The notes below the pieces were generated by a model. The model was not told the DNA's origin, made no database searches, and was given only the letters and a program-made list of their open reading frames with translations. Below are positions 2 through 51,832 of a stretch of DNA of 64,000 nt, piece by piece. How positions within the stretch are numbered: position 1 is the stretch's first letter; every line of letters begins with the position of its first letter. The DNA lies in the IMG/VR virus record IMGVR_UViG_3300026521_000471, positions 160,468 to 224,467 of that record; one strand, given 5' to 3'. A program made the translations under genes and the position numbers.

Positions 2-931
2 GATATTGAAATATTAGATTCTGAATCAACATACAAATATTTTAAAAAAAGAAAAATCCCAGGTTTTAACCATGCACCATTTAGCCATTCAAAAATGGAG
101 ACATGGGCTAGTTGTCCTAAAAAATTTGAATTTAATTACATCATTCGTCCACCTAGGGAATCTACACCCAACCCTATTTTAGAAAAAGGAACTTTATTTC
201 ACGCTGTTTTAGAGTTTGATATGGTAGATAAACTTGATGATTTTGATATTCCTGATAATTTTGAGGCTCTGTCTCGTGATGATTGTGGAAAAATTATTAC
301 TCAAGCATTAGAATTTTCAGAAAATTCAGAAATTTACCAATGGATTAAAAATCTAAAAGGTAAAAAAGTACCAGAACAAGAAATGTTCCTTGGACCAAAT
401 CTTGAACCTGTAGAATGTTTAGAAGATTCTTTAATACGAGGCTTTATAGACTTAATAATTTGGGATGATGAAACTGGTTCGTGTTATATATTTGATTGGA
501 AAACAGGCGGCAAATCAAAAGAGGCTCTAAAAAAGTGGCCTAAATCAAAAGACCAATTAGAATTATATGCCATTTGGGCTCATGAAGTTTATGGTGCTAG
601 TTATATAGAAACTGCGTTTGTTTATGTAGAACATAATCATATGGCTAAATATACATTTGAATCTAAAGATATTCCTATACTCAAAAAAAAGTTTTTAAAT
701 AAAATAAATAATATTGAAAAAGATAAAACTTTTAATAAATCTATATCACAACTTTGTGCATGGTGCGATTTTAAAGAATTATGCTTAGGTATTCCAGCAG
801 ATAAAAATCCAAGAGAAATAACTAAGGATGAAATATTTTCCGCAGCTAAAGGTACACCTAAAAAAAATAAATCAAATTCTAAAAATACTGCTTTCTTAAA
901 TAAAATTAGAAAAGGTCGAAATAAAGAATGA
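2..931 (+). CDS. PD-(D/E)XK Cas4/AddB-like exonuclease, 5'-truncated by window edge
   Basis: Frame is open from position 2 (PFSHSKMETWASCPKKF); GTLFH, RGFIDL..FDWKTG, QLELYA and C-terminal CAWCDFKELC Fe-S motif. Confidence 0.85.
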   Translation, partial: DIEILDSESTYKYFKKRKIPGFNHAPFSHSKMETWASCPKKFEFNYIIRPPRESTPNPILEKGTLFHAVLEFDMVDKLDDFDIPDNFEALSRDDCGKIITQALEFSENSEIYQWIKNLKGKKVPEQEMFLGPNLEPVECLEDSLIRGFIDLIIWDDETGSCYIFDWKTGGKSKEALKKWPKSKDQLELYAIWAHEVYGASYIETAFVYVEHNHMAKYTFESKDIPILKKKFLNKINNIEKDKTFNKSISQLCAWCDFKELCLGIPADKNPREITKDEIFSAAKGTPKKNKSNSKNTAFLNKIRKGRNKE

Positions 932-1536
932 AACTCGAAACATTAATTTCAACAGTTAAAGATAAAATTATATACAAAATGGATTTCTATCAATCTATTA
1001 TTATTATTAATGTTCCAAAGCAAAAAATTTTAAATAAAGGTACTATAATTTTTTTGCTAAATAAACAATCAGGTGTATTATCTGGAGAATGGTTTAATAA
1101 TAAAAATAGCAATATAAAATTATTTGGAATTCTAAATAATAAATTTATAAAATCCATATTAAAAAATAAAAAATTAAGATTATTAAATAGTATCTTACCT
1201 GATGTATTAGTCAATAAAGATTTTATAATAGAATATAAATTTCTTTCACCAGAAGAGAAAAAATTATTGAAAGAGTATATAATATCTTCTGAAGAACAAA
1301 TACACAACAAGTATATGACATTTGATAATAAATTTAATAAAGTCTCTTGGGAACAAAGCATTAAACTATCTTCTAACTATTTTGTAGAATGGTGTAAAGA
1401 TAGCTCAAATATACAAGATTGTATTAAAAATGCAATCAACATTGCTAATAAAAATTTAGATATAAATTTAAAACGCAGAGCAATTTTAAATAAATGTTTT
1501 ATAGATATTAGAAAATGGAGAGAAAAAAATGGCTAA
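928..1536 (+). CDS. hypothetical protein
   Basis: 202-aa ORF overlapping both neighbours. Confidence 0.6.
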   Translation: MKLETLISTVKDKIIYKMDFYQSIIIINVPKQKILNKGTIIFLLNKQSGVLSGEWFNNKNSNIKLFGILNNKFIKSILKNKKLRLLNSILPDVLVNKDFIIEYKFLSPEEKKLLKEYIISSEEQIHNKYMTFDNKFNKVSWEQSIKLSSNYFVEWCKDSSNIQDCIKNAINIANKNLDINLKRRAILNKCFIDIRKWREKNG

Positions 1537-2077
1537 AAAAAAGAAAAATATACCTATCCATATTACAAAACGTGATTCATCAACATTTGTTTTAAATAAG
1601 ATTTCGTCTAGTATGTTATATCATGTACAACAAAAATTCGCATATTTACCACCAGGTTATAAATTTCAACCTAGATTTAGACTTATGGGTATTAAAGGTG
1701 TACAAGTTAAGCTAGTACACGCAGATGGTTCATTCCCAATGGGATTATTTTCAGAAGTTGTAGAATATTTAACAGAGGTGCAAAAAAAGAAAGTTACTAT
1801 GAGCAGTGAAGTAATGGAACATTTTTTACCACTAACTGATTTTTTTGAAGATGGTATAAAAGATGATATATTCTCAGACTATGAATTCGATGGTAATCCT
1901 GTAATATTAAGAGATTATCAATTAGGTGCAGTTGAAGCCGCTTTTGAAAATAGAAACGGCTTATTAAATTTATCTACTGGTGCAGGTAAGTGCTTAGGTG
2001 GTGAAACTAAAATACGAGTAAAATTAAGTAGTGAACTAATTAAAAAATATAAAGTTATTATAAAAGGCGAATTATGA
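1529..2077 (+). CDS. UvsW-like SF2 helicase N-terminal half fused to a 28-aa split-intein N-fragment
   Basis: GYKFQPRFR, Q-motif LRDYQ, Walker A STGAGK followed directly by intein block A CLGGETKIRV, stop 28 codons later. Confidence 0.8.
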   Translation: MAKKKKNIPIHITKRDSSTFVLNKISSSMLYHVQQKFAYLPPGYKFQPRFRLMGIKGVQVKLVHADGSFPMGLFSEVVEYLTEVQKKKVTMSSEVMEHFLPLTDFFEDGIKDDIFSDYEFDGNPVILRDYQLGAVEAAFENRNGLLNLSTGAGKCLGGETKIRVKLSSELIKKYKVIIKGEL

Positions 2078-2364
2078 AATTATGGATGAATGGATATGAT
2101 ACGACCATAGATGATTTTCCACAAATCATCTATAAAAATAAAATTTTATCATATGAAGAACAAGCCTTTTTAACTAATAAAATTTTTGGCTTATTTCAAT
2201 TAACACATCGAGATAAATTTAAAGAAATAAATGAAATAAAATTAAATACAAATGAATTACCATTTAAAAAATTATATCAATTAATTCATTCAGATGATAA
2301 ATATGAATTTGAAGCTGAATATATGGTATATCTATTAAATTATTTCTCCGTGGAACTAGATTAA
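2074..2364 (+). CDS. hypothetical protein
   Basis: ATGA overlap with upstream gene. Confidence 0.55.
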   Translation: MKLWMNGYDTTIDDFPQIIYKNKILSYEEQAFLTNKIFGLFQLTHRDKFKEINEIKLNTNELPFKKLYQLIHSDDKYEFEAEYMVYLLNYFSVELD

Positions 2365-2567
2365 TGATAACTGAAATTATAAGATTTAACTGTCATGTAT
2401 TAAAGGTAAATAAATATAACAAAATAACTCCTGATGAATTGTTATTAGAATATAAAACTCGTAACAACCTTATTTTAGAAAATACGGAAGTATATGTTGA
2501 AAGCTGTAAATGGGCTGCTGGAAGTACTAGTACTATTATAACAAAAGTGAAAAGGATAGAAAAATGA
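2364..2567 (+). CDS. hypothetical protein
   Basis: Translationally coupled on both sides. Confidence 0.5.
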   Translation: MITEIIRFNCHVLKVNKYNKITPDELLLEYKTRNNLILENTEVYVESCKWAAGSTSTIITKVKRIEK

Positions 2568-3013
2568 CTTATGCTCAAAATAAAAAGGCTAGATTTAATT
2601 ATGAAATCATAGAAATATTTGAAGCAGGGATTGTACTAACAGGTGGTGAAGTAAAATCTGTAAGAGATAGTACAATTTCTCTTAAAGAAAGCTATGTTAA
2701 AATAAAAAATAATGAATTATTTTTAACTCAAGCTCATGTTTCAGTCCCTACATACATACCATCATATGCAGTATTTGATGAAGTCCAAGATAGAAAATTG
2801 TTAATGCATAAAAGAGAGATTTTAAAACTTAAAAATAAATTGAAAGAACAGGGTTTGACTTTAATTGTATTATCAATTTATCAACGTGAAGGCACAAAAA
2901 AGATAAAAGTACAGTTGGCATTAGCTAGAGGTAAAAAATTATATAATAAAAAACAAACTATCAAAGAACGTGATATTAAACGAGATATGGAAAGAACATT
3001 AAAAAAATTCTAA
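2564..3013 (+). CDS. smpB: SsrA-binding protein SmpB
   Basis: NKKARFNY, EAGIVLTGGEVKS, RKLLMHKREI, ARGKKLYNKKQTIKERD. Confidence 0.96.
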   Translation: MTYAQNKKARFNYEIIEIFEAGIVLTGGEVKSVRDSTISLKESYVKIKNNELFLTQAHVSVPTYIPSYAVFDEVQDRKLLMHKREILKLKNKLKEQGLTLIVLSIYQREGTKKIKVQLALARGKKLYNKKQTIKERDIKRDMERTLKKF

Positions 3014-3017
3014 TAGG

Positions 3018-3025
3018 TATAAATA
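3018..3025 (+). promoter_or_regulatory. T4 gp55-type late promoter
   Basis: TATAAATA ~30 nt before GGAG RBS/ATG 3054. Confidence 0.55.
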
Positions 3026-3053
3026 ATTATAAAATAATCTTAGGAGCAATAAA

Positions 3054-3347
3054 ATGGCAAGAAAGAAAAAGATTCAAGAAGAAGTAGAAGTACCAGTTGT
3101 TGAAGTAACTGATGAAGAGATTCAAGAAGAAGTAGAAGTAGAAGTAGAAGTACCAGTTGTTGAAGTAACTGATGAAGAGATTCAAGAAGAAGTAACTGAT
3201 GATTTTGATAATATTGCAATTACTGATTATGCTATGGTATCAAATGAATTAGCAAAAAAAATACTTGAGAAAAAAGGTAAAAAAGTATTATTTGAAGAGC
3301 CAGAAGACGTTCAATCTAGCTTTCATATGAAACCATTAAAAAAATAA
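3054..3347 (+). CDS. acidic low-complexity protein with internal repeat
   Basis: IQEEVEVPVVEVTDEE repeated; AGGAG RBS. Confidence 0.65.
   Translation: MARKKKIQEEVEVPVVEVTDEEIQEEVEVEVEVPVVEVTDEEIQEEVTDDFDNIAITDYAMVSNELAKKILEKKGKKVLFEEPEDVQSSFHMKPLKK
3071..3203 (+). repeat. coding tandem repeat (~48-60 bp unit, ~2.5 copies)
   Basis: gattcaagaagaagtagaagtaccagttgttgaagtaactgatgaaga repeated. Confidence 0.8.
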
Positions 3348-5121: not shown

Positions 5122-6375
5122 ATGGCTATTTTACAGCTCCATTCTGATGATCCAAATTTTGGATACATTATCAAAAAAAACCCAAATTCATCTATGCAAA
5201 TAAGAAGTATACGTAAAGGTACTGCTTTTACATGGTATTCTCATAATGGTACCGACTTTAATATTTATTTTAAAGATGCTGATAATGATGTATCGTTTGG
5301 ATCGCAAGAATTCGATTATCTAAATATTTCTAAATATAATTCACCGATGTTTATTATCAATGCAATAAGTGAGTTTTTTTCAAGTACTGTTAGAGAAGAA
5401 TCAGAATTAGATATAAAAAGTTCAAAATATTTTTATATTAACTTACTTGAAATCAAAAGAATAAAACAATTAATGGATTTTAAGAAATATTTCCCTGATT
5501 TTGAAATTGAAATTACCGAACAAGTTGGGAAAAATTATACTATTAAAGTAATAACTGAAAATAGTTGGTTTATGTTATTAAATTATATTAATCTTATGAT
5601 GATTTTTATTGCATTATCAAGTAACGACTACGTACATTTAGATAGTTCAAATATTGAAAAATATCTAAATGCTATGAATCGATTGGATGCACCATTTTTT
5701 ATACGTTATTTAGTAAGTAGAAATCTTATTAAAAGTAAAAACCAATTTAAAAAATATAAACAATTACTTGAAAAATCAAAAAGATATAATATCAATATGG
5801 CATATGGTAATACGGCTATGCAACGGAAAGACAAAATAGAACGTTTATTATCATTTGATAAATCGATTCTTGATATTGGGTGTGGAGAAGGTTTTTATGC
5901 TATAGATTTTTCTAAAAAAATAGAAAAATATTCTTATAATGCCATTGACATTAATCCTAATCTATTAGAGTCGATCAAGATAAAAGCTTCAAAAAAAGAA
6001 ATTACAAATATTAATCTCTTTAATAGTCTAGAAGATTTTATAAAGATTTACAATGATGAGTTAGTAGATATAATACTAACTGAAGTTATTGAACACATGC
6101 CAAAAGATGAATCAAAAAGATTAATAGAGACAGTATTGATGTCTATTAATTTTAATACATTCATTATTACCGTACCAAATAAAGACTTTAATATTTTTTA
6201 TGAATTAGGTGATGAAATGAGACATGATGATCATGACTGGGAACCTACATTTGATGAATTTAAAAATTTTATAGCTAATTTTAATAATGATGGTTTATCT
6301 TTTGAATTTATAGAAATAGGTGATACTATCGATGGTATCTCTACAAGTATCGGTTGTATAATTAAAAAGGTATAA
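5122..6375 (+). CDS. hen1: Hen1-like 3'-terminal RNA ribose 2'-O-methyltransferase
   Basis: N-terminal FGYIIKKNP; MTase ILDIGCGEG, EVIEH, VPNKDFN, RHDDHDWE. Confidence 0.88.
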   Translation: MAILQLHSDDPNFGYIIKKNPNSSMQIRSIRKGTAFTWYSHNGTDFNIYFKDADNDVSFGSQEFDYLNISKYNSPMFIINAISEFFSSTVREESELDIKSSKYFYINLLEIKRIKQLMDFKKYFPDFEIEITEQVGKNYTIKVITENSWFMLLNYINLMMIFIALSSNDYVHLDSSNIEKYLNAMNRLDAPFFIRYLVSRNLIKSKNQFKKYKQLLEKSKRYNINMAYGNTAMQRKDKIERLLSFDKSILDIGCGEGFYAIDFSKKIEKYSYNAIDINPNLLESIKIKASKKEITNINLFNSLEDFIKIYNDELVDIILTEVIEHMPKDESKRLIETVLMSINFNTFIITVPNKDFNIFYELGDEMRHDDHDWEPTFDEFKNFIANFNNDGLSFEFIEIGDTIDGISTSIGCIIKKV

Positions 6376-8152: not shown

Positions 8153-10843
8153 ATGAATAAAATTAAAACACAAGTACATACTATAATAATGCTTATTGGA
8201 CCTAGTGGTTCTGGTAAAACAACATTCGCTAATGAAATTCTAATACCCACATTACAAGAATATAAAGGTAGTGGAAATGACAATTTAAAAACAAATATAC
8301 AATATATTAGTTCTGATGATATTAGAAAAGATATTTTAGGATATAATTATAGTAAAATAGATGAAATTATGACTGAAAGTTCAACACAAGCATTTGAAAT
8401 ATTATTTACAAAATTAAGAGCTGTTACTAGTTATCCAATCAATGCTGAATTTGTTATTTTAGATACAACTGGATTAAGTGAAAAATTTAGAAATGATGTT
8501 TTAGATATAGCAAAAGATAATAATTATAATGTCGATATTATAGTTTTCGATTATAAGAATATTGATGAATATCAGAAAAATTTTTCTGATGAAGTTTATC
8601 AACAACCTAGTACTAATGGCAAAATTATTTCTAAGCATATAAAAAGATTAAAAACAGAAACATTAAAAACATTAAAAAAAGGTGTATATAAAAATATTCA
8701 TAAAATTAAAAATAAAGATTTTCTTTTAGAAGTTGAACAGGAGAATCCATATGATTTAACACCTACTATGTTAAAACCTCTTTATAGTGTAGATGTATGG
8801 GATTGGAAAAAATATACTGATAGAATATTAAATAGTACTTATGATTGGATTACTATTGGTGATGTTCATGGATGTATTCATGAATTAAAACAATTACTTG
8901 AAAAATATGGTTTTATAATTGAAGACAATGAAATCATAGATACAAACAAAACAAAAAATATAGGATTGATTTTTGCAGGTGATTTAATTGATAAGTCGTC
9001 AGAAGAAGATTTAACTGAAACTATAAGATTTATACATAAAAATATGATAAAATTTCAAGATCGTTTTCAATTAATATTAGGTAATCATGAAGAGATGGTC
9101 TGGAAATGGATAACAAATCATAAAGATTTAGAAATTACTCCAGAACGATTGGATCAGAAAAAAAGATACTATAATACAGCAATTTTACTAGAGAAAAATG
9201 AAGAGTTAAAATCTATGTTTTTAGATATTTTTCATAATATGAAAGGTTGGGTTAAATTTATAGGATTAAACAAAAGAAGTTTTGTAGTTACACATGCACC
9301 ATGTGAGGTTAAATATCTCGAAAAAATGGATCGTATTTCATTAAAACGTCAATATAAATGCGCTAGTAGAAGTAAAAACAAAGATAAGACTAATGATGAA
9401 CTAACACCATATTTAAAAGAAGAAGCAGTTAATAACCATCCAGTTCACATATTTGGTCATATGGGACAATCATCTGTTAGATCTTTTAAAAATAAAGTTT
9501 GTATTGATACAGGCTGTGTATATGGTGGAAGATTAACTGGATACAGTATAGGATACGGTAAACCATTTATTCAAAGTGTAAAATCATTATCTCCTAAGAG
9601 TGCAAGAAACGACTTTGGAAATAATCTATTTGAAGATATAGGTAAAGCTATAAAAGAAGTATCTATTGAAGATTTAAATCCATACAACCAAAAAAGATTA
9701 GATTATATAGTAAAAAATGGCATAGGATACATAGGAGGTACAATTTCACCTTCAAATAAAAACATCGAAAAAAATTCACTAGAATCTTTAGATAGTGGAC
9801 TTAATTATTTCAAAGATAAAGTAGATAGTGTAGTTCTACAACCTAAATATATGGGGTCTAGAGCACAACTGTATCTCTTTAAAGATAATATTGAAAAATG
9901 CTATGCTACAAGTAGAAATGGATATAAAATTAGAGAGGACTTAACTGATTTATTCTCATCTAAATTAATAGAATACAAGCATATTTTTGATATGTATAAT
10001 GCTGATGAGATAATTATAGATGGTGAATTATTACCATGGGCTCTTTTAGGAAAAGGTTTGATAGAAACACATTTTAAAACTGCGGATATAGCTATCCAAA
10101 CAGAAATCGACTTTCTGGATGATAATGGGTTTGATAAGGCTTTTTTAAGTTTAAAGGATGAATTTAATGAATCAGAATTTTTAAAAGATAAAAATATTTT
10201 AGCTAAAAAAGAATTAGCTAAAAAATATGGTCACAAATATCACTCTTATAAAGATTTAAAATTTGAAATTGATAGATTCATACCTTTAAGTAAACACAAA
10301 AAAGCTTGGAAAATTTTCAATAAACAAATAACCCTTTATGGAGATGATACAAATACAGATTTTAAAGGTTTTAGATTATTAAAAGTAATATCAAATAACA
10401 ATATAATCGATTTGGATCTAACCCCTAGCGAACACTTTAAACTATTAAATTCAGATGATATTCATATTGTTGATTTCAATGATAAAGACTATTTAGTTAA
10501 AGCTGAAAGATGGTATGATGATTTAGTGAGTAATCAAAATATGGAAGGTTGTGTAATAAAACCGGAAGTAAAGTTATTAGAATCTTGGATTGCTCCATAT
10601 TTAAAAGTAAGAAATGAAGAATATCTTTCTATCATTTATGGGTATGATTATAAATTCCCTGTCAAATTTAATAGATTATTAAATCAAAAAAATATTTCTA
10701 AAAAATTAAGACTCTCTATATCAGAGTATAAATTAGGAGAAGAAATGCTTAAAGCTCCTATGGGTAGTAAAGAACAAATACAGATTATAGCCAATCTATT
10801 ATTTGAAAATGAAAAAGAAGAAAGCGTCGATCCAAGATTATAA
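8153..10843 (+). CDS. pnkp: bacterial-type Pnkp (kinase-phosphatase-ligase), partner of Hen1
   Basis: P-loop GPSGSGKT; metallophosphoesterase GDVHG, GDLID, GNHE; ligase KYMGSRA, DGELLPW, EGCVIKP; terminus VDPRL. Confidence 0.93.
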   Translation: MNKIKTQVHTIIMLIGPSGSGKTTFANEILIPTLQEYKGSGNDNLKTNIQYISSDDIRKDILGYNYSKIDEIMTESSTQAFEILFTKLRAVTSYPINAEFVILDTTGLSEKFRNDVLDIAKDNNYNVDIIVFDYKNIDEYQKNFSDEVYQQPSTNGKIISKHIKRLKTETLKTLKKGVYKNIHKIKNKDFLLEVEQENPYDLTPTMLKPLYSVDVWDWKKYTDRILNSTYDWITIGDVHGCIHELKQLLEKYGFIIEDNEIIDTNKTKNIGLIFAGDLIDKSSEEDLTETIRFIHKNMIKFQDRFQLILGNHEEMVWKWITNHKDLEITPERLDQKKRYYNTAILLEKNEELKSMFLDIFHNMKGWVKFIGLNKRSFVVTHAPCEVKYLEKMDRISLKRQYKCASRSKNKDKTNDELTPYLKEEAVNNHPVHIFGHMGQSSVRSFKNKVCIDTGCVYGGRLTGYSIGYGKPFIQSVKSLSPKSARNDFGNNLFEDIGKAIKEVSIEDLNPYNQKRLDYIVKNGIGYIGGTISPSNKNIEKNSLESLDSGLNYFKDKVDSVVLQPKYMGSRAQLYLFKDNIEKCYATSRNGYKIREDLTDLFSSKLIEYKHIFDMYNADEIIIDGELLPWALLGKGLIETHFKTADIAIQTEIDFLDDNGFDKAFLSLKDEFNESEFLKDKNILAKKELAKKYGHKYHSYKDLKFEIDRFIPLSKHKKAWKIFNKQITLYGDDTNTDFKGFRLLKVISNNNIIDLDLTPSEHFKLLNSDDIHIVDFNDKDYLVKAERWYDDLVSNQNMEGCVIKPEVKLLESWIAPYLKVRNEEYLSIIYGYDYKFPVKFNRLLNQKNISKKLRLSISEYKLGEEMLKAPMGSKEQIQIIANLLFENEKEESVDPRL

Positions 10844-15398: not shown

Positions 15399-16538
15399 AT
15401 GAAAAAAAGTATGAGAGAAGAATCTTTAGGAACTAGACTTAAAGGTTATGAAAGAGAGTTTGAATCAGTAATCGATCCAAAGGATTTTATTATTTGTAGA
15501 ATTGATGGACATAAATTTAGCAAATATACAAAAGGTATGAAAAAACCATTTGATAAAATGTTGTCAAATACAATGGAGGAAACTACTAAAGACCTTGTTG
15601 AAAAATTTGGAGCCGTAACGGGCTATACGCAATCTGATGAAATTTCATTGGTTTTTGTCCCTCAATTCAAAGAAAGATTAATACCTATTGAAACCAAAGA
15701 ATTATTTGTTCTTAATGATGAAGAAGCAACCTATAAAGTTTATGACAAAGAATACAACTTGCTAGGTTCATTAGATATTAGTTATGAAGATATGGATGAT
15801 GAATATTTCAGTATTAACTTTTGGGTAGTTTCTGATACTAATGATGAAATTATCGATCAATGTTCTTGGCAAAATAGAAACTCTAAAACTGAGGCTAAAG
15901 CATTAGAAACGCTTTTAAAGTATATCATTAAGAAAGTTGAAATAACAAATGAGCAAATTTTTGGAGGAAGAGTTCAGAAATTAACTTCTTTGATTGCGGC
16001 ATATACTACTATGCAGTTTAATAAACACTTTTCTAAATTTTTAGAAAAAACATACGAAGATTATGAAGAAAAATTAGAAAAGGGCGAAATCGATACGAAT
16101 AGTTTAGAGGCCATGAAATACCTTAAAACAATGGATGAAAAAGTAGGTAATGCTTGGTTTGATGCTAGAGTTTATGGCGTATCATCTAAAGAAGAAGCAT
16201 TTAACAGTATTATGTGGCGAATTCGTGATGCCGAGAAGAACTCTAGATCAATGTTTGCACAGACATACTGCTCTCATAAATCGCTATTAGGAAAAAATGG
16301 TCTTGAACAGGTTGAATACTGTAAAGAAACTACTGGTAAAGATTGGGAAGAAGTTGAAGATAAATACAAATATGGCATTTTAGTTAAAAAAGAAAAATAT
16401 CTTAAACCTATTTCTGAAGGGACTATGGATTATGCTCAAAATGATTTTGTAGAAAGATCCAGAATTATTAGTTGGGCTGAAAAAATTACTACTTTCTCTG
16501 GTGAAAAAGTTGAAATGGTTGTTAGGAAATATAAATGA
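15399..16538 (+). CDS. Thg1-like 3'-5' nucleotidyltransferase (tRNA-His guanylyltransferase family)
   Basis: RIDGHKFSKYT, KPFD, YTQSDEISL, FGGRVQKL, FDARV, WRIRDAEKNS. Confidence 0.9.
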   Translation: MKKSMREESLGTRLKGYEREFESVIDPKDFIICRIDGHKFSKYTKGMKKPFDKMLSNTMEETTKDLVEKFGAVTGYTQSDEISLVFVPQFKERLIPIETKELFVLNDEEATYKVYDKEYNLLGSLDISYEDMDDEYFSINFWVVSDTNDEIIDQCSWQNRNSKTEAKALETLLKYIIKKVEITNEQIFGGRVQKLTSLIAAYTTMQFNKHFSKFLEKTYEDYEEKLEKGEIDTNSLEAMKYLKTMDEKVGNAWFDARVYGVSSKEEAFNSIMWRIRDAEKNSRSMFAQTYCSHKSLLGKNGLEQVEYCKETTGKDWEEVEDKYKYGILVKKEKYLKPISEGTMDYAQNDFVERSRIISWAEKITTFSGEKVEMVVRKYK

Positions 16539-19417: not shown

Positions 19418-20821
19418 ATGGCTTTATTAACTTACGATGAAGTATTAGAAATCACAAAAATAAATGAAACTTTTAAAATGAAACACCAAAAAATAGGTAA
19501 CACAGAAATTGCAATGTGTACTTATTTTTTAGCAAATGCAGGTGATTTTTTTGATGCAAAATTAGATGGCTCTATGGTTAGAGCCACAGAATTAAGAGGT
19601 ATAACATTTGTAAAAGCTCCAAATTCAGACTGGAAAACATATTTGTTTATCGATAAATTTTTTAATATCGGTCAAACAAATGGAACTAATATAACAAATA
19701 TGGAACTTTCTATCAATGACTCAACTGAAATTTGTAATATTAATAAACTTTTTATCGATGAAAATGAGAAAACATATCGTGCAATAGATTTAAAGTTAAA
19801 TATGATTGTTGCTGAATTTGATAGAAATACTGAAACTCATGGGGATTTTTTTCAAATTTTATCACTAGATAAAAAAGTTTTACCTACATTGAAACCTGAA
19901 AATTCTTGGATGTATGAGGATGTAAAAGATTTAGAAATTGTAAGAATTGCAAATAAAGAAGATGGATCCGCAATAAGATTTCTTTTAATTGAAGGAAAAT
20001 TAGTGGCTAAAACAAAATTTTCTTTTGAATCAGAACAATGCAAATTAGCTATGGAAATAGTTGAAAAAGATCCTAAACTTAAAGCATTTATTTTAACAAC
20101 TTTAGAGTTTGGATATGCAGCAATTTTTGAAATAGTTTCACCATTTAATAAAATCGTTTTAACATATCCAGAAACATCTCTTAGATTGTTGCAACTAAGA
20201 GATGAAAATAATGATGGGTTATATCTAAATATATATGATAATACATTAGTAAAAGCATTTAATATCTTGACTGCCAATCAAGAACCTTTATACACACTTG
20301 ATGAGTTACTTAAATTAAAAGAAACCGTTGAAGATAAAGAAGGTTGGGTAATTACATTTGAAAATGGAAAAATGGCAAAGGTAAAAACTGATTGGTATAT
20401 GTCACTTCATGGTATTTTAACTGATGGGTTAAAAGAACATAAAATAATTGAAAAGGTTTTAGACGAAACGATTGATGATACTATAGCAATGATACCAGAA
20501 GAAAATATTGAAGAACGAGATTTTATTGATGGTATCTCTGAAATTATAATTAATCATGTAAATCATTTAGTGTCAGATGCAGAAGCTAAATTTAAAAATT
20601 CATGGAATGGAAATAAAAAAGAGTTAGCACTAAAATTTAAGGATGATAAACGTGCTTTTCCATATATAATGAGTTTTGCAAATGGAAAAAATATTGAAGA
20701 AATTGAAAAACAAGTTATAGATAGAGTTAAATTTGAATGTAGACGTTTAGAAATGGCTAAACAATACCTTAAAAATTTAGGTTTTGACAAAGAACTCGAA
20801 ATAAAAATTGAGGATGATTAA
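19418..20821 (+). CDS. T4 Rnl1-type RNA ligase
   Basis: ELRGITF, KFFN, motif I KEDGS, FEIVSPFNKIV, EGWV, KVKTDWY. Confidence 0.9.
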   Translation: MALLTYDEVLEITKINETFKMKHQKIGNTEIAMCTYFLANAGDFFDAKLDGSMVRATELRGITFVKAPNSDWKTYLFIDKFFNIGQTNGTNITNMELSINDSTEICNINKLFIDENEKTYRAIDLKLNMIVAEFDRNTETHGDFFQILSLDKKVLPTLKPENSWMYEDVKDLEIVRIANKEDGSAIRFLLIEGKLVAKTKFSFESEQCKLAMEIVEKDPKLKAFILTTLEFGYAAIFEIVSPFNKIVLTYPETSLRLLQLRDENNDGLYLNIYDNTLVKAFNILTANQEPLYTLDELLKLKETVEDKEGWVITFENGKMAKVKTDWYMSLHGILTDGLKEHKIIEKVLDETIDDTIAMIPEENIEERDFIDGISEIIINHVNHLVSDAEAKFKNSWNGNKKELALKFKDDKRAFPYIMSFANGKNIEEIEKQVIDRVKFECRRLEMAKQYLKNLGFDKELEIKIEDD

Positions 20822-20823
20822 TC

Positions 20824-20991
20824 ATGAAATACGGTTTTAGTTTATTTGAATTAATTATTGTAGTTGTAATATTGGGAATTCTAGCAGCAGTTGCTATTCC
20901 TAGATTATCAAATTCTTCATCAAATAATGATAAAATTTCATACAAAAAAATAATTTTTACTAATGGTGATGGTGGATCCGCCGAGAATTGA
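20824..20991 (+). CDS. 55-aa type IV prepilin-like peptide (not in ORF track)
   Basis: MKYG|FSLFELIIVVVILGILAAVAIP N-methylation motif; GAGG RBS at end of ligase gene. Confidence 0.75.
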   Translation: MKYGFSLFELIIVVVILGILAAVAIPRLSNSSSNNDKISYKKIIFTNGDGGSAEN

Positions 20992-21351
20992 ACTCGGGTC
21001 TGCCACTACTTCCATTTAAATCTCATTTACAAGTTTAGTTTGATTTTTAATACTTTAATACTTAGATAACCAAACAAATCGGTATTAAAGGCACTTGATA
21101 TAATTTTCGTCTAAAGGTATCAAGTTTAACTTTAGCTTATCTATTTTTTATTATACACTCTGTATTTATTAGTAAATAGACAACTAATAAACTGAGTGAT
21201 TCCGGGCTCCCAGAGGGAGGATTAAGCAGCTACTCTCGCAGTCTGTGGAATATAAAGTTTTGTGTTTGCATTTAAGCTTTTTTGATGATTAAGTCATCAC
21301 TCTACTTGCAATTTAAATTTCTTATAGCAACATCGATCCCAATTCGGACCC
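20970..21351 (-). ncRNA. ssrA: tmRNA, 382 nt, tag (A)ANTKLYIPQTARVAA*
   Basis: 5' GGGUCCG pairs with 3' CGGAUCC-ACCA with G3.U wobble; T-arm CCGAG-UUCAAUU-CUCGG; tag ORF 21269-21222 ends AA-stop. Confidence 0.96.
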
Positions 21352-21669: not shown

Positions 21670-23169
21670 ATGGCAAAATTTAACCAAGGTACTAAAAGTA
21701 TCCCAAATAGTAAAAATATGGCTGGAGGGGTATCATATGATCGCCCAATAAAAAAAGAGGTTGCGACTGTTGTTTTAAACTCTATGCTTAATGGTGATTC
21801 ATATTATGAAAAAGAAGGTGAACGTTTAAAACGAATTGAAACTCTTATCACTACATCAAAGTCTGATGCTGAGTTTGTAGCAAAAGCTATGGTGTTTACT
21901 AGAACAAATGGTCGTCTTAGAAGTATTTCACATTTCATGGCAAATATTTTAGCAGAAAATGTAAAAGGTAGTGACTTTTTACGTTCAGCATTAACAAAAG
22001 CTATTGTAAGACCGGATGATATGACAGAAATGTTATCACTTTGGGATACAAGAAATCCAAATAAAATGGTTCCGAATTCACTTAGAAGAGCCTTTAAGAA
22101 AGCTTTGGAAACTAAATTTGATGAATATCAATTTCGTAAATATGCTCAACCAAAATCAAAAGTGAAACTAAAAGATGTCGTTAAACTAGCACATCCTTCA
22201 CCTAAGAATTTTGATGATGAAACTATTTTTAAAAGAGTTATCGAAGATCAATTAAAGGCTGTTGAAACAGCACAAACTATCAATGCATCTAAAACTGGTG
22301 AAGATCGAGTTGAAGCATATATGAAAGAAATTAAATCTGGTAAAATGGGTTATATGGCAGCATTAAAAAATATTAGAACATTGATGGAAAATAATATTTC
22401 AGAAGATGACTTAAAACAATGGTCTAATTTTATAACTGATCCTAAAAGGGTACAAAAATCAATGGTACTTCCATTTAGATTTGTTGATGCATGGAATGCT
22501 GTAAAAGATTTACCTATTAATGAATTTAAGAAAAATATTGTTAAGAAAGCACTTGAGAGAGCTTTTGCCCTATCAGCTGGAAATACAAATATTGCTTCTG
22601 ATGATGAAAAAGTGGCTATTTTACTTGATGAATCAGGTTCTATGGGCGGATATTCAAATAATGACCGTAAAACACCATTTTATATTGGTAAAGTATTATC
22701 AGCTGCGATGAAAGTAGGTATGGATGATGATAAGTGTCTGTTTTATACTTGGGCAGATACATGTACAAGAAGAGATATAAAAGGTTTGTCATCTTTTGAT
22801 TTTATCAATAATTTAAATACTAGAGGTGGAGGTACTGATGTATCAGCTCCTTTAAAAGAGTTAATTAAAACAAAAACATTTGTTGATAAAATTATAATCT
22901 TTAGTGATATGCAGATGTATGGTGGATGGGGAAATATTGGAGATCAACTCAAAAATTATTTAAAAACATATCGTAAAGAAGTCAATCCAAATGTAAAAGT
23001 ATTATTTTGGAATTTAGAAGGATATGGTGGTGGTTCACCATTAGATATTGAAAAAACATCTGATATTTTTGAAGTAGCTGGTTTTTCAGATAGCATGCTT
23101 CAAATTATACCTAAATTATGGAGTGATAAAGATTTTTTAATTAAAGAGATTGAAGCTATATCACTTTAA
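21670..23169 (+). CDS. TROVE + vWA protein (Ro60/Rsr family)
   Basis: NMAGG.SY, RPDDMTE, EYQFRKY, LKDVVKLAHP, MAALKNIR, LPFRF; vWA LDESGSM, GGGTD, IFSDMQ. Confidence 0.92.
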   Translation: MAKFNQGTKSIPNSKNMAGGVSYDRPIKKEVATVVLNSMLNGDSYYEKEGERLKRIETLITTSKSDAEFVAKAMVFTRTNGRLRSISHFMANILAENVKGSDFLRSALTKAIVRPDDMTEMLSLWDTRNPNKMVPNSLRRAFKKALETKFDEYQFRKYAQPKSKVKLKDVVKLAHPSPKNFDDETIFKRVIEDQLKAVETAQTINASKTGEDRVEAYMKEIKSGKMGYMAALKNIRTLMENNISEDDLKQWSNFITDPKRVQKSMVLPFRFVDAWNAVKDLPINEFKKNIVKKALERAFALSAGNTNIASDDEKVAILLDESGSMGGYSNNDRKTPFYIGKVLSAAMKVGMDDDKCLFYTWADTCTRRDIKGLSSFDFINNLNTRGGGTDVSAPLKELIKTKTFVDKIIIFSDMQMYGGWGNIGDQLKNYLKTYRKEVNPNVKVLFWNLEGYGGGSPLDIEKTSDIFEVAGFSDSMLQIIPKLWSDKDFLIKEIEAISL

Positions 23170-43517: not shown

Positions 43518-44678
43518 ATGAATATTGAAAAATTGGAAATTAATAAGCCTAGTGAATTGACCCAAGTTGTTTTTACACAACAAATAAAAAAAGAGCTTAA
43601 TATTTATAAAATGTCGGCATTACAAATAGATCTTATAAATGTCATGTTTTATAAGATACGAAAGGAAATTGGTAAGCATAAATTAGAAATAGATGAATCA
43701 CAACCATCAACACTTTTTGAATTTACATTAAATGATTTTAATAATATGCTACAGAAATATAACAATAATCAATATGGTGAAATTATTGAACAATTAGATT
43801 CATTATCCGATATAAAAATCATAATTAATAGTATTGGTAAAAATAAAGATATTGATGAAATGATCATTACTAGATTCATTCAAGAAATAAGAGTATCAAA
43901 GCATAGAAAAACCGAAAAGAAAAAGATTAAATTAGCAATTTCAAATACAATTATAAAAAGATTTATAGATGTTAAAAAATATTTTTCAAAAATGTTTTTA
44001 ACTATACAATTCTCTATGAAGTCTAAATATTCTAAATTGTTATATGAATTATTAAAAGATTATGAAGGTATAAATACAAAACAATTTGAGTTGAATGTTT
44101 TAATGGACTTGATCAACGTTAGTGAAGATTCGCAGAGAGTATGGTCAATATTCAACCAAAACATTCTCAAAAAGGCAGTTAAAGAAATCAATGAGAAATC
44201 GGATATAAAAGTTTCGTATGAACCTATTAAAGAAAGACCTGATAATGGCAGGTTACAAGTAACTAAAATTAAGTTTATAATAGAAGAGCAACAATGTGCT
44301 TTAATAGATAGTCAAGAGCCTGAAATGTCAATAGAAGAACAATTGCTTTATAATAAAAAAAGGGCTATAGCAGAAGAAAGATTAGAAAAGGCAAAACAAT
44401 TCCAAGAAATCAATAATGAAGAAGCATGGATTAAAAAGACTATTAAATCTATTACAGATGATTATGTTGAATTACAGGATTTAATAGAAGAGTCTAAAGA
44501 AGTTTTAGATAATACAGATTTATCAAAATTCAATGATTTATTGTTAATAAAATATGGCGATTTAGTTGGTATGGTAGATTATAAATTATGTTATGTTTTT
44601 GATGATACACAAGCACCACTTACAAGTAATGCTTATGAAACTTATTTGGTTTTAGAAGAATTAAAATCTAATCCATAG
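43518..44678 (+). CDS. Rep_3 (RepB/RepE-like) replication initiator
   Basis: MKSKYSKLLYELLKDY, FNQNILKKAVKEINEKSDIKVSYE, VTKIKF; iterons upstream. Confidence 0.85.
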   Translation: MNIEKLEINKPSELTQVVFTQQIKKELNIYKMSALQIDLINVMFYKIRKEIGKHKLEIDESQPSTLFEFTLNDFNNMLQKYNNNQYGEIIEQLDSLSDIKIIINSIGKNKDIDEMIITRFIQEIRVSKHRKTEKKKIKLAISNTIIKRFIDVKKYFSKMFLTIQFSMKSKYSKLLYELLKDYEGINTKQFELNVLMDLINVSEDSQRVWSIFNQNILKKAVKEINEKSDIKVSYEPIKERPDNGRLQVTKIKFIIEEQQCALIDSQEPEMSIEEQLLYNKKRAIAEERLEKAKQFQEINNEEAWIKKTIKSITDDYVELQDLIEESKEVLDNTDLSKFNDLLLIKYGDLVGMVDYKLCYVFDDTQAPLTSNAYETYLVLEELKSNP

Positions 44679-50611: not shown

Positions 50612-51832
50612 TTATCCCATTGTATAACTAATAGAGCAATTCTTTATATATTCTGTGGTTTCTACAATATCATAGTGACCTTTTTTCATAAATGATTGGA
50701 TCTTCATCCTAGTGTCTCTGGCACTAGTAGATACCTCAACACCTTTTTCTATATCATAGAGCTTATAATTATTATTAACTGTTATAAATTGATTATCTTT
50801 ACTATAATCTTGTAAAACCACTAAACCTTCGTGCTCATAGTTATTATATTTGATATTATTCAACCATTCTTGTAATAACACTTTAGCTTCATATTCATCT
50901 CTTAATTTAAAAGCTTCTTTTCGTAGCTTATGTTTGTATGCTTCAGGATTTTCTATAGCATCTTTTGTTTTGAATCTCGTTATTTCTTTAAACTTACGAT
51001 TTATATCTCTTTCTACATAATATGCAACTTTTCTATTCATCAAAAATTCTTTACTAAAGTACGTATCTGGATCTTCAACTTCAGGTGCAACATGTGTTAC
51101 TATTCTAACTTCAGCTGTTTGTACTCTATTTGTTTCAGCAACAGTTGATTTAATTTTATTATATTCAAAATATAAATTTGTTTTTTCATTTAACTCTTTA
51201 GAAACCCTCTTTAAAATATTGCTATTTAACCTTGACCAAGTAAGCTCTTTATATTCCAAACCAAAATCGATCATTCGCACTAATTCTTCTATTGAATAAG
51301 TGCTTACAGTTCTATCTTTTTTATAGAATTTTTCATAAATTATTTTGCTATATTTGCTTTTCAATCCATACTTATCAATTCTATACAACAATGCAAATAA
51401 ATGCAGATTATTTCTCAATAACTTAACTAAAGTAGTATTTACAATAATATTCAATCTTTTATTAATGTCATTATCAGTACTACTTATATTATATTGATAA
51501 ACAAATGTTGCTTTAGACATAAGAACACTATTATCATTTTCATGGTATATTGTTGCAACAGATTTTGAAAGCGATTCAAGTGTTTGCATGATAGTTTCAA
51601 TACGCAATTCTAAAAAACCCAATGATGAAGATAATTCATGCATATTAGTATCTATCACGTATCCTAATTGATTTCGATCAATACCTTCCGTAGCAAAAGC
51701 ATCATCTCGTTCAACAATATTAATAAGTACATTAACTAAGTCAATTTCAGATTTTGTAATATTCCAAAAGAGATGTTTAAATTTAGATTGCAACCATAAG
51801 ACCTTTATAATTTTTAAATTATTTATACTCAA
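50612..51832 (-). CDS. second Rep_3-like initiator protein
   Basis: LKSKYSKIIYE, WSRLNSNILKRVSKELNEKTNL; paralogous to 43518-44678. Confidence 0.7.
   Translation of the reverse strand: MSINNLKIIKVLWLQSKFKHLFWNITKSEIDLVNVLINIVERDDAFATEGIDRNQLGYVIDTNMHELSSSLGFLELRIETIMQTLESLSKSVATIYHENDNSVLMSKATFVYQYNISSTDNDINKRLNIIVNTTLVKLLRNNLHLFALLYRIDKYGLKSKYSKIIYEKFYKKDRTVSTYSIEELVRMIDFGLEYKELTWSRLNSNILKRVSKELNEKTNLYFEYNKIKSTVAETNRVQTAEVRIVTHVAPEVEDPDTYFSKEFLMNRKVAYYVERDINRKFKEITRFKTKDAIENPEAYKHKLRKEAFKLRDEYEAKVLLQEWLNNIKYNNYEHEGLVVLQDYSKDNQFITVNNNYKLYDIEKGVEVSTSARDTRMKIQSFMKKGHYDIVETTEYIKNCSISYTMG

Follow-up and report, generated by a model that had tools for sequence, protein, structure and literature searches.

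Natural atypically split inteins have an N-terminal intein fragment (IntN) of 15 to 37 amino acids (aa); the named natural examples are AceL TerL, GOS TerL, VidaL, and PolB16. A second described group comprises the "fractured genes" (gp41-1, NrdJ-1, and others), phage replication and repair genes from metagenomes that are broken at an intein, in which the halves are adjacent, a free-standing homing endonuclease gene lies between them, and the split is canonical, with a long IntN (Dassa et al. 2009, PMC2677866). The Walker A loop is a documented intein hot spot, with DnaB, MCM, RFC, and other proteins as hosts (Novikova et al. 2016, PMC4760082); a split-intein passage in that source concerns PolIII alpha. 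Here we describe a UvsW-type helicase that is encoded in two pieces, divided at the Walker A motif, in a large uncultured hydrothermal-vent phage, each piece being fused to one part of an intein. The phage is IMG/VR virus record IMGVR_UViG_3300026521_000471 (224,467 bp, 27.9% G+C, CheckV completeness of ~85%), and the stretch analyzed (the window) is its final 64 kb (64,000 nucleotides, positions 160,468 to 224,467 of the record). In a literature search, no description of a split intein in UvsW was found.

The N-terminal half of the helicase (N-half) is a 182-aa open reading frame (ORF) in the window (Table 1), composed of a 154-aa N-extein and a 28-aa IntN. N-extein residues 1 to 154 scored 32.4 bits against Pfam UvsW_N (cut-off, 25.3), aligned with residues 19 to 143 of T4 UvsW (PDB 1rif and 2oca), matched PHROG DNA helicase families, and ended at the Walker A lysine. 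The codon of Cys155, TGC, lies at 1991-1993, and from Cys155 there are 28 residues to the TGA. Among 39 aligned N-halves, G151, G153, K154, C155, and L156 were invariant and T160 was nearly so. A GGAG sequence is located 9 to 12 nt 5' of the ATG; since the start of the gene overlaps the upstream ORF and its stop overlaps the next ATG, the N-half sits inside a tightly packed operon. An earlier note, made from the letters of the window, had described a UvsW-like ORF cut at the Walker A GAGK by an atypically short IntN, with no partner in the window, and had proposed that the helicase is assembled by trans-splicing from a distant locus. The cut at GAGK, the position of the Cys codon, the 28 residues, and the stop were each confirmed in the sequence, and the length of the IntN falls within the range in the literature. 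The 64-kb window contains no Hint match and no UvsW C-half; in the whole 224-kb record, Hint matches were found at 146 kb and 150 kb only, both upstream of the window.

Scanning the complete record with ResIII brought up the partner gene, which was then read directly. It is a 469-aa ORF located 14,004 to 15,413 bases upstream of window base 1; the two UvsW halves are divergent and 15.5 kb apart. Residues 1 to 140 are the C-terminal intein fragment (IntC), which ends in GTVHHN and is followed by Thr141 (position +1); residues 141 to 469 are the 329-aa C-extein. The C-extein carries ResIII and Helicase_C above their Pfam cut-offs (Helicase_C, 35 bits), its best match in the PDB was T4 UvsW (residues 144 to 471, E = 9e-16), and the motifs DEVH, LTGT (motif III), and QSIGRGLRR (motif VI) could be read directly. 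Because a TAA immediately precedes the partner ATG and closes the frame there, IntC cannot extend further 5'. When K154 is joined to T141, GAGKT is restored and the predicted spliced length is 483 aa; intein-free GAGKT relatives are 483 to 489 aa long. The exteins, which correspond to T4 UvsW positions 19 to 141 and 144 to 471, abut at GAGK↓T (the arrow marks the splice junction) without gap or overlap and together form one complete host protein that has the UvsW N-terminal domain, Walker A, DExH, motif III, and motif VI of a UvsW-type superfamily 2 (SF2) helicase. The arrangement is that of a naturally split intein, in which each extein part is encoded together with one intein part by a gene of its own in the same genome. 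The earlier note had predicted a distant gene with an IntC fused to a helicase C-half that starts with Ser or Thr, had suggested that it be looked for in the remaining genome, and had named GK↓S/T of the P-loop as the insertion site; such a gene exists, with HHN↓T and DEVH, and the site is GK↓T. Judged by the complementary IntC and C-extein that it encodes, assembly of the helicase by trans-splicing from a distant locus is supported. A further copy of UvsW was not detected in the record. A Pfam Helicase_C genome scan gave no match in the record, though the C-half carries this domain at 35 bits; the loose first pass of that scan misses weak domains, and its negatives are therefore weak. In standard annotation both pieces appear as "hypothetical protein" or plain helicase.

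An assembly error at ~2075, which the earlier note had named as a possible refutation, was checked in Logan contigs from four runs of three studies (hydrothermal-vent and epibiont metagenomes). Runs from such metagenomes contained near-identical sequence. Window positions 1000 to 3109 showed zero differences in contigs from all four runs, and three contigs bridged the stop at 2075-2077 by >31 bases on each side; the independent assemblies thus reproduced the stop exactly. Short "joints" that also appeared in the contig comparison had sides of 20 to 22 bases in low-complexity DNA and were not credible. The frame of the N-half past the TGA is full of further stops and hence closed, and therefore no single nonsense mutation, readthrough, or frameshift at 2075 accounts for the end of the gene. 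With the rest of the intein lying elsewhere, behind its own ATG directly after a stop, and with the split pattern found throughout the family (see below), we assign a negligible probability to the idea that a contiguous, intein-bearing helicase gene was misassembled or missequenced. It is also scarcely credible that the N-half is a free-standing UvsW N-domain protein whose tail has a non-intein role and that the C-half works alone. The UvsW N-terminal domain is indeed separable and has its own Pfam family; however, the tail opens with the invariant block A Cys-Leu right after the Walker A Lys and aligns with the N termini of contiguous inteins located at this site, and the C-half alone cannot bind ATP because the first part of Walker A is missing from it.

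The intein identity of IntC was assessed by modeling IntC together with 10 extein residues in AlphaFold2, with 48 homologues as the basis (predicted local distance difference test [pLDDT], 88.5; predicted template modeling score [pTM], 0.79). The 50 best Foldseek matches listed from the PDB were all inteins or bacterial intein-like domains; an E value of ≤0.001 was reached by 57 matches. The listed matches included the RadA intein (E = 1.5e-6; template modeling score on the query [TMq], 0.73) and VidaL (root mean square deviation, 2.1); gp41-1, Npu DnaE, and the Cat atypical intein were further matches listed. A profile of the 48 IntC sequences matched VidaL best in the PDB (2.6e-11), followed by gp41-1 (6.6e-10) and PolB16 (1.3e-7). 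In the model, IntC adopts the HINT fold. In the 48 sequences, H74 (block B, TTDNH), H138, H139, N140, and T141 were invariant and D120 and H128 (block F) were nearly invariant, at a mean column identity of 41%. All residues of a class 1 intein are thus present: Cys1, the block B His, the block F Asp and His, the block G His-Asn, and Thr+1. By this model and alignment, IntC has the HINT fold and the class 1 catalytic set.

We then assessed how widely the split is conserved. Relatives of the N-half were collected as protein database clusters at 90% identity, which gave 71 clusters of 124 to 218 aa (mostly 158 to 188 aa). All 71 read STG(A/S)GK↓CL..T, and the stop followed 14 to 32 residues past the Lys, with the exception of one cluster with a 63-residue tail. 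All of the ~65 split C-half clusters inspected, a count that includes the middle pieces of three-piece relatives, start with an IntC of 122 to 148 aa that reads HHN↓T. The same split was retained down to ~45% identity. Four relatives (P0086, P0111, P0112, and P0113) carry a contiguous (cis) intein at the same GK↓C...HHN↓T site, and many intein-free helicase relatives read GAGKT. At ~70% protein identity, the neighborhood of the N-half (PD-(D/E)XK nuclease, ~204-aa ORF, N-half, ~100-aa ORF overlapping the stop, ~70-aa ORF, and SmpB) is kept, including the overlap of stop and ATG, as is that of the C-half (PhoH and the DnaB-type helicase). These sequence comparisons indicate that the split architecture is under long-term purifying selection. 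That the halves are decaying pseudogene remnants of a rearranged helicase gene would agree with their position on opposite strands 15.5 kb apart and with a record that is ~85% complete; both ORFs are intact, however, all helicase motifs are present, the record yielded no other UvsW copy, and the split is kept in the 71 N-half and ~65 C-half clusters with conserved neighbors, which makes this alternative highly improbable.

For two further genomes, both halves could be located on a single contig. They are divergent and 10.7 kb apart in JACCDW010215491.1 (261 kb); in Ga0486129_000021 (89 kb), which belongs to a subclass with a 15-aa IntN, they share a strand, with the C-half coming first, and are separated by 11.2 kb. 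The halves are thus 10.7 to 15.5 kb apart in all three genomes in which both could be placed, and therefore their separation is old, and in none of these genomes are they adjacent; the earlier note gave nearby halves as the usual case, which none of the three shows. A maximum-likelihood tree calculated quickly from 47 inteins had two deep clades, supported at 99 each in the Shimodaira-Hasegawa-like approximate likelihood ratio test (SH-aLRT), and both contained cis and split members. At least two changes between the cis and split states are forced by well-supported branches of this tree. In some related phages a second intein, contiguous or itself split, is located deeper in the UvsW C-extein, so that the helicase is encoded in three pieces; relatives with a second UvsW intein or extra pieces were P0028, P0030, and P0035 (611 to 618 aa), P0069 to P0085 (317 to 384 aa), and P0043 to P0068 (~268 to 299 aa), and the C-terminal piece of three-piece helicases usually begins MKIKKIEEI. 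No relatives were found in a viral contig collection searched with the N-half alone and with the alignment. In a phage collection there was no close cultured phage; all matches had <60% identity, and the best were ordinary UvsW genes of jumbo phages.

To locate the split within the intein fold, the IntC part of the model was compared with an AlphaFold2 model of the cis relative P0111 (pLDDT, 91; pTM, 0.87). The IntC-only model consists of coil residues 1 to 7, a helix at residues 8 to 19, and then a beta-rich body. In the P0111 model the order of elements is a one-residue beta1, beta2 (17-21), an extra helix (27-35), beta3 (42-45), and alpha1 (46-56). The extra helix of P0111, SEFGKYLLK, resembles the IntN tail SELIKKYKVII, and the start of IntC corresponds to beta3-alpha1; the helix of IntN would accordingly match the extra helix between beta2 and beta3. 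Neither the cis relatives P0086 and P0113 nor the subclass with an IntN of 14 to 16 aa has this helix. With the canonical beta3-alpha1 unit placed in IntC (helix 8-19 of the model), the split would be of the S1 type rather than the S2 type. By alignment to the cis relatives and comparison with the P0111 model, it would fall between beta2 and beta3, as in VidaL and PolB16; unlike in those two, IntN would be extended by an additional conserved helix.

The two fragments are oppositely charged. The net charge is +4 for IntN and -18 for IntC; the mean charge of 65 long IntNs was +2.8, and that of IntC was -13.5, its first 30 residues having -7. In the four cis inteins, the corresponding N-terminal stretch of 28 residues had charges of 0, -3, 0, and 0. 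Electrostatic steering is known from other natural split inteins, and the charge complementarity of IntN (28 aa) and IntC (140 aa) is suggestive of it. Such complementarity would also serve plain association; the halves might be splicing-dead, forming a tight noncovalent dimerization module in a two-subunit helicase, an idea with which intein models in Pfam and NCBIfam that score below threshold would also agree. An unspliced complex, however, would retain 168 residues in the Walker A loop between the Lys and the Thr, and residues needed only for the chemistry (Cys1, the block B His, the block F Asp and His, the His-Asn, and Thr+1) were invariant or nearly so in 39 to 48 sequences, compared with ~41% for the rest. 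We consider such a dimerization module improbable.

Taken together, we predict from the sequences and the models that the UvsW halves form an active trans-splicing pair, to which we give a probability of roughly 85%; the element is a real naturally split intein and is probably active. This prediction draws on the presence of both genes in one genome, on exteins that abut, on the HINT fold, on the conservation of the catalytic residues and, over the long term, of the architecture, and on a sound assembly. Several points weigh against it. Coexpression of the two genes, association of their products, and class 1 splicing to an intact P-loop are what we infer from these data. For the IntN helix, both its placement and its proposed role come from a modeled cis relative that is ~24% identical. 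Block B of IntC reads TTDNH and not the CAxxH usual in the family, and promoter-like sites are no commoner than chance in this AT-rich DNA (neither promoter nor terminator scans rose above the shuffled expectation). The scores with Pfam Intein_splicing (31.2; cut-off, 35.8) and NCBIfam intein_Cterm (12.7; cut-off, 15.6) are below threshold; because the query is a fragment of an intein, partial-length matches of this kind are expected.

In the mechanism that we propose for the trans-splicing pair, gene 1 would yield N-extein(154)-IntN(28) and gene 2 would yield IntC(140)-C-extein(329). The cationic IntN would dock on the strongly acidic IntC and complete the HINT fold, after which Cys1 would undergo an N-S acyl shift assisted by the block B His (H74 of IntC). 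The thioester would be transferred to Thr+1 (T141), and cyclization of Asn140, assisted by H139, H138, D120, and H128, would release a 483-aa helicase with an intact P-loop and a free IntN/IntC complex.

The UvsW intein belongs to a wider family of Walker A inteins. A search of 1.84 billion representatives with the intein profile gave 798 proteins with an E value of ≤1e-10; from the best 150, 90 proteins with an N-terminal intein domain were chosen (50%-identity representatives). HHN was found at residues 127 to 153 in 89 of the 90, followed by T in 76, S in 12, and C in 1. The same family is thus seen as an N-terminal IntC of ~138 aa, ending HHN↓T/S/C, on varied P-loop NTPases (P0314 to P0459). 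The exteins were ClpB-like AAA_2 in 16 of the 90, SF2 helicases (Helicase_C) in 14, AAA_5 in 12, and RecA (RecA/UvsX) and PhoH in 5 each, with clamp-loader-type AAA+ proteins (DNA_pol3_delta2 and Gp44_lid) and other P-loop families represented by 1 or 2 members each; SNF2 and ABC were also among the extein types. These sequences suggest that a large pool of atypically split Walker A inteins exists. It is conceivable, but as a whole doubtful, that an intein clade specialized on the Walker A Lys↓Thr/Ser site has spread over many kinds of P-loop NTPase genes and switched between the cis and split states more than once, that the atypical UvsW and the canonical DnaB-type split inteins of this phage are mutually orthogonal posttranslational gates, so that helicase assembly would need two transcription units, and that the extra helix of IntN is a subclade-specific capture element.

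Table 1. Coordinates of the UvsW halves and of other features of the phage (W, window; R, record)
Feature	Position	Strand	Evidence or remarks
UvsW N-half, 182 aa	W 1529-2077	+	UvsW-like helicase N-half
N-extein, UvsW N-terminal domain and start of SF2 ATPase core to Walker A Lys	W 1529-1990	+	Pfam UvsW_N, T4 UvsW alignment, PHROG
First Walker A half, G-A-G-K	W 1979-1990	+	Direct sequence reading; completing Thr is the first C-extein residue of the partner
IntN, 28 aa: Cys1 and beta-hairpin (CLGGETKIRVKL), then Lys-rich helix (SSELIKKYKVIIKGEL)	W 1991-2074	+	Homologue alignment
TGA stop ending IntN	W 2075-2077	+	Overlaps ATG (2074-2076) of next ORF
UvsW partner gene (C-half), 469 aa	R 145054-146463	-	ResIII scan, direct reading
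Upstream ORF, 202 aa, unknown function	W 928-1536	+	Overlaps N-half start; belongs to the conserved gene string PD-(D/E)XK nuclease, ~204-aa ORF, N-half
Two small ORFs, 96 and 67 aa, unknown function	W 2074-2567	+	Between N-half and smpB; position kept in relatives
SmpB	W 2564-3013	+	Pfam, 165 bits
RNA-repair-type cluster	W 5122-6375, 8153-10843, 15399-16538, 19418-20821, 21670-23169	+	Hen1 methyltransferase, Pnkp-like kinase/ligase, Thg1-like, T4 Rnl1-type RNA ligase, Ro60/TROVE protein
Transfer-messenger RNA (tmRNA)	W 20970-21351	-	ARAGORN; Rfam, 115.5 bits
Rep3-type (plasmid-like) initiator	W 43518-44678	+	
Rep3-type (plasmid-like) initiator	W 50612-51832	-	
PhoH/GIY-YIG region	R 141926-144437		PIN-PhoH gene (475 aa) on - strand
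GIY-YIG gene nearest to the UvsW halves	R 142280-143017		Beyond phoH
DnaB/gp41-type helicase N-part with IntN	R 149130-150551	+	Second split intein
dCache-GGDEF-EAL protein, 725 aa	R 151851-154028	+	Cyclic-di-GMP signaling

Other genes of the phage were also recorded (Table 1). A second split intein lies between the UvsW halves, ~10 to 11 kb upstream of window base 1: the N-part of a DnaB/gp41-type helicase ends in ADQYNR↓C and is followed by a canonical IntN of ~96 aa (block B, SGRH) and a stop. This split architecture of the DnaB-type helicase recurs in dozens of relatives. Its IntC and C-extein were not found in the ~85% complete 224-kb record by a DnaB_C scan or by tblastn with the C-exteins of intein-free relatives. 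The dCache-GGDEF-EAL protein is likewise encoded between the helicase halves. In the PhoH/GIY-YIG region, next to a complete PIN-PhoH gene comes a gene for a SegE-like GIY-YIG endonuclease, encoded on the other strand, and beyond it a 98-aa duplicate of the PhoH C terminus that is 87% identical, an arrangement that looks like the footprint of a homing-endonuclease invasion. In Pfam, PHROGs, and the ESM Atlas, the two small ORFs 3' of the N-half showed no sign of a homing endonuclease or an intein. In Rfam, the tmRNA was the sole match in window positions 1 to 24000, with no group I intron or other RNA element. The phage tmRNA encodes the tag peptide ANTKLYIPQTARVAA and together with SmpB makes up a full trans-translation pair; near smpB of the related phage JACCDW010215491.1 (L010:5693-5860), a homologue of ribosomal protein L33 was found. 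The two Rep3-type initiators lie <8 kb apart.

Throughout a widespread group of vent and epibiont phages, an essential recombination helicase is maintained as two pieces encoded far from each other. Natural split inteins with a very short IntN are prized for protein semisynthesis and for protein editing in live cells, and the UvsW locus adds a Cys1/Thr+1 pair with an IntN of 28 aa. It comes with a natural series of 71 IntN variants (nearly all of 14 to 32 aa), matching IntCs, cis relatives, and intein-free alleles, which permits direct tests of IntN length and of the extra helix against association and splicing rate. The pair is a plausible candidate for a new orthogonal intein, and because the same genome has a canonical split intein in the DnaB-type helicase, natural orthogonality is testable.

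Compared with the fractured genes of Dassa et al. (PMC2677866), the UvsW halves are 10.7 to 15.5 kb apart, have no endonuclease gene beside either of them, and are split atypically; the nearest GIY-YIG gene is not between the halves. The P-loop inteins in Novikova et al. (PMC4760082) are those of DnaB, MCM, and RFC-S, and UvsW is absent from its top-host tables. AceL TerL (IntN of 25 aa) and GOS TerL (37 aa) are phage derived and, like the UvsW pair, combine a short IntN of similar length with a long IntC. They reside in terminase genes, however, and are split after the canonical helix alpha1 (S2), whereas beta3-alpha1 of the UvsW intein would be in IntC and the helix of its IntN would be an insertion, unlike the canonical alpha1 in these two inteins. 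PolB16 OarG (PDB 8CPN) has an S1-type split, an IntN of 15 aa, and a long IntC and matches the UvsW-intein family by sequence and fold, but it is cysteine-less (Ser1/Ser+1), resides in a PolB gene, and has a dispensable block B His; the UvsW intein has Cys1/Thr+1 and an invariant block B His.

VidaL (PDB 6VGV and 6VGW), from a Lake Vida metagenome, is the best PDB match of the UvsW-intein family profile and a top structural match and is Cys dependent, as the UvsW intein would be. Its IntN has 16 aa, with the split after beta2 at the S1 site, compared with 28 aa and an extra helix following the hairpin in UvsW; its block B, CAxxH, is the consensus of the UvsW-intein family, and it ends in SHN where the UvsW intein ends in HHN. 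Pairwise sequence searches did not link VidaL to the UvsW intein or to the subclass with a 15-aa IntN. The VidaL inteins were named after T4-like helicase and UvsX hosts; if they came from such genes, the UvsW-intein family is the wider natural context of the VidaL tool. The UvsW pair adds to the naturally atypically split inteins, a kind that is already known.

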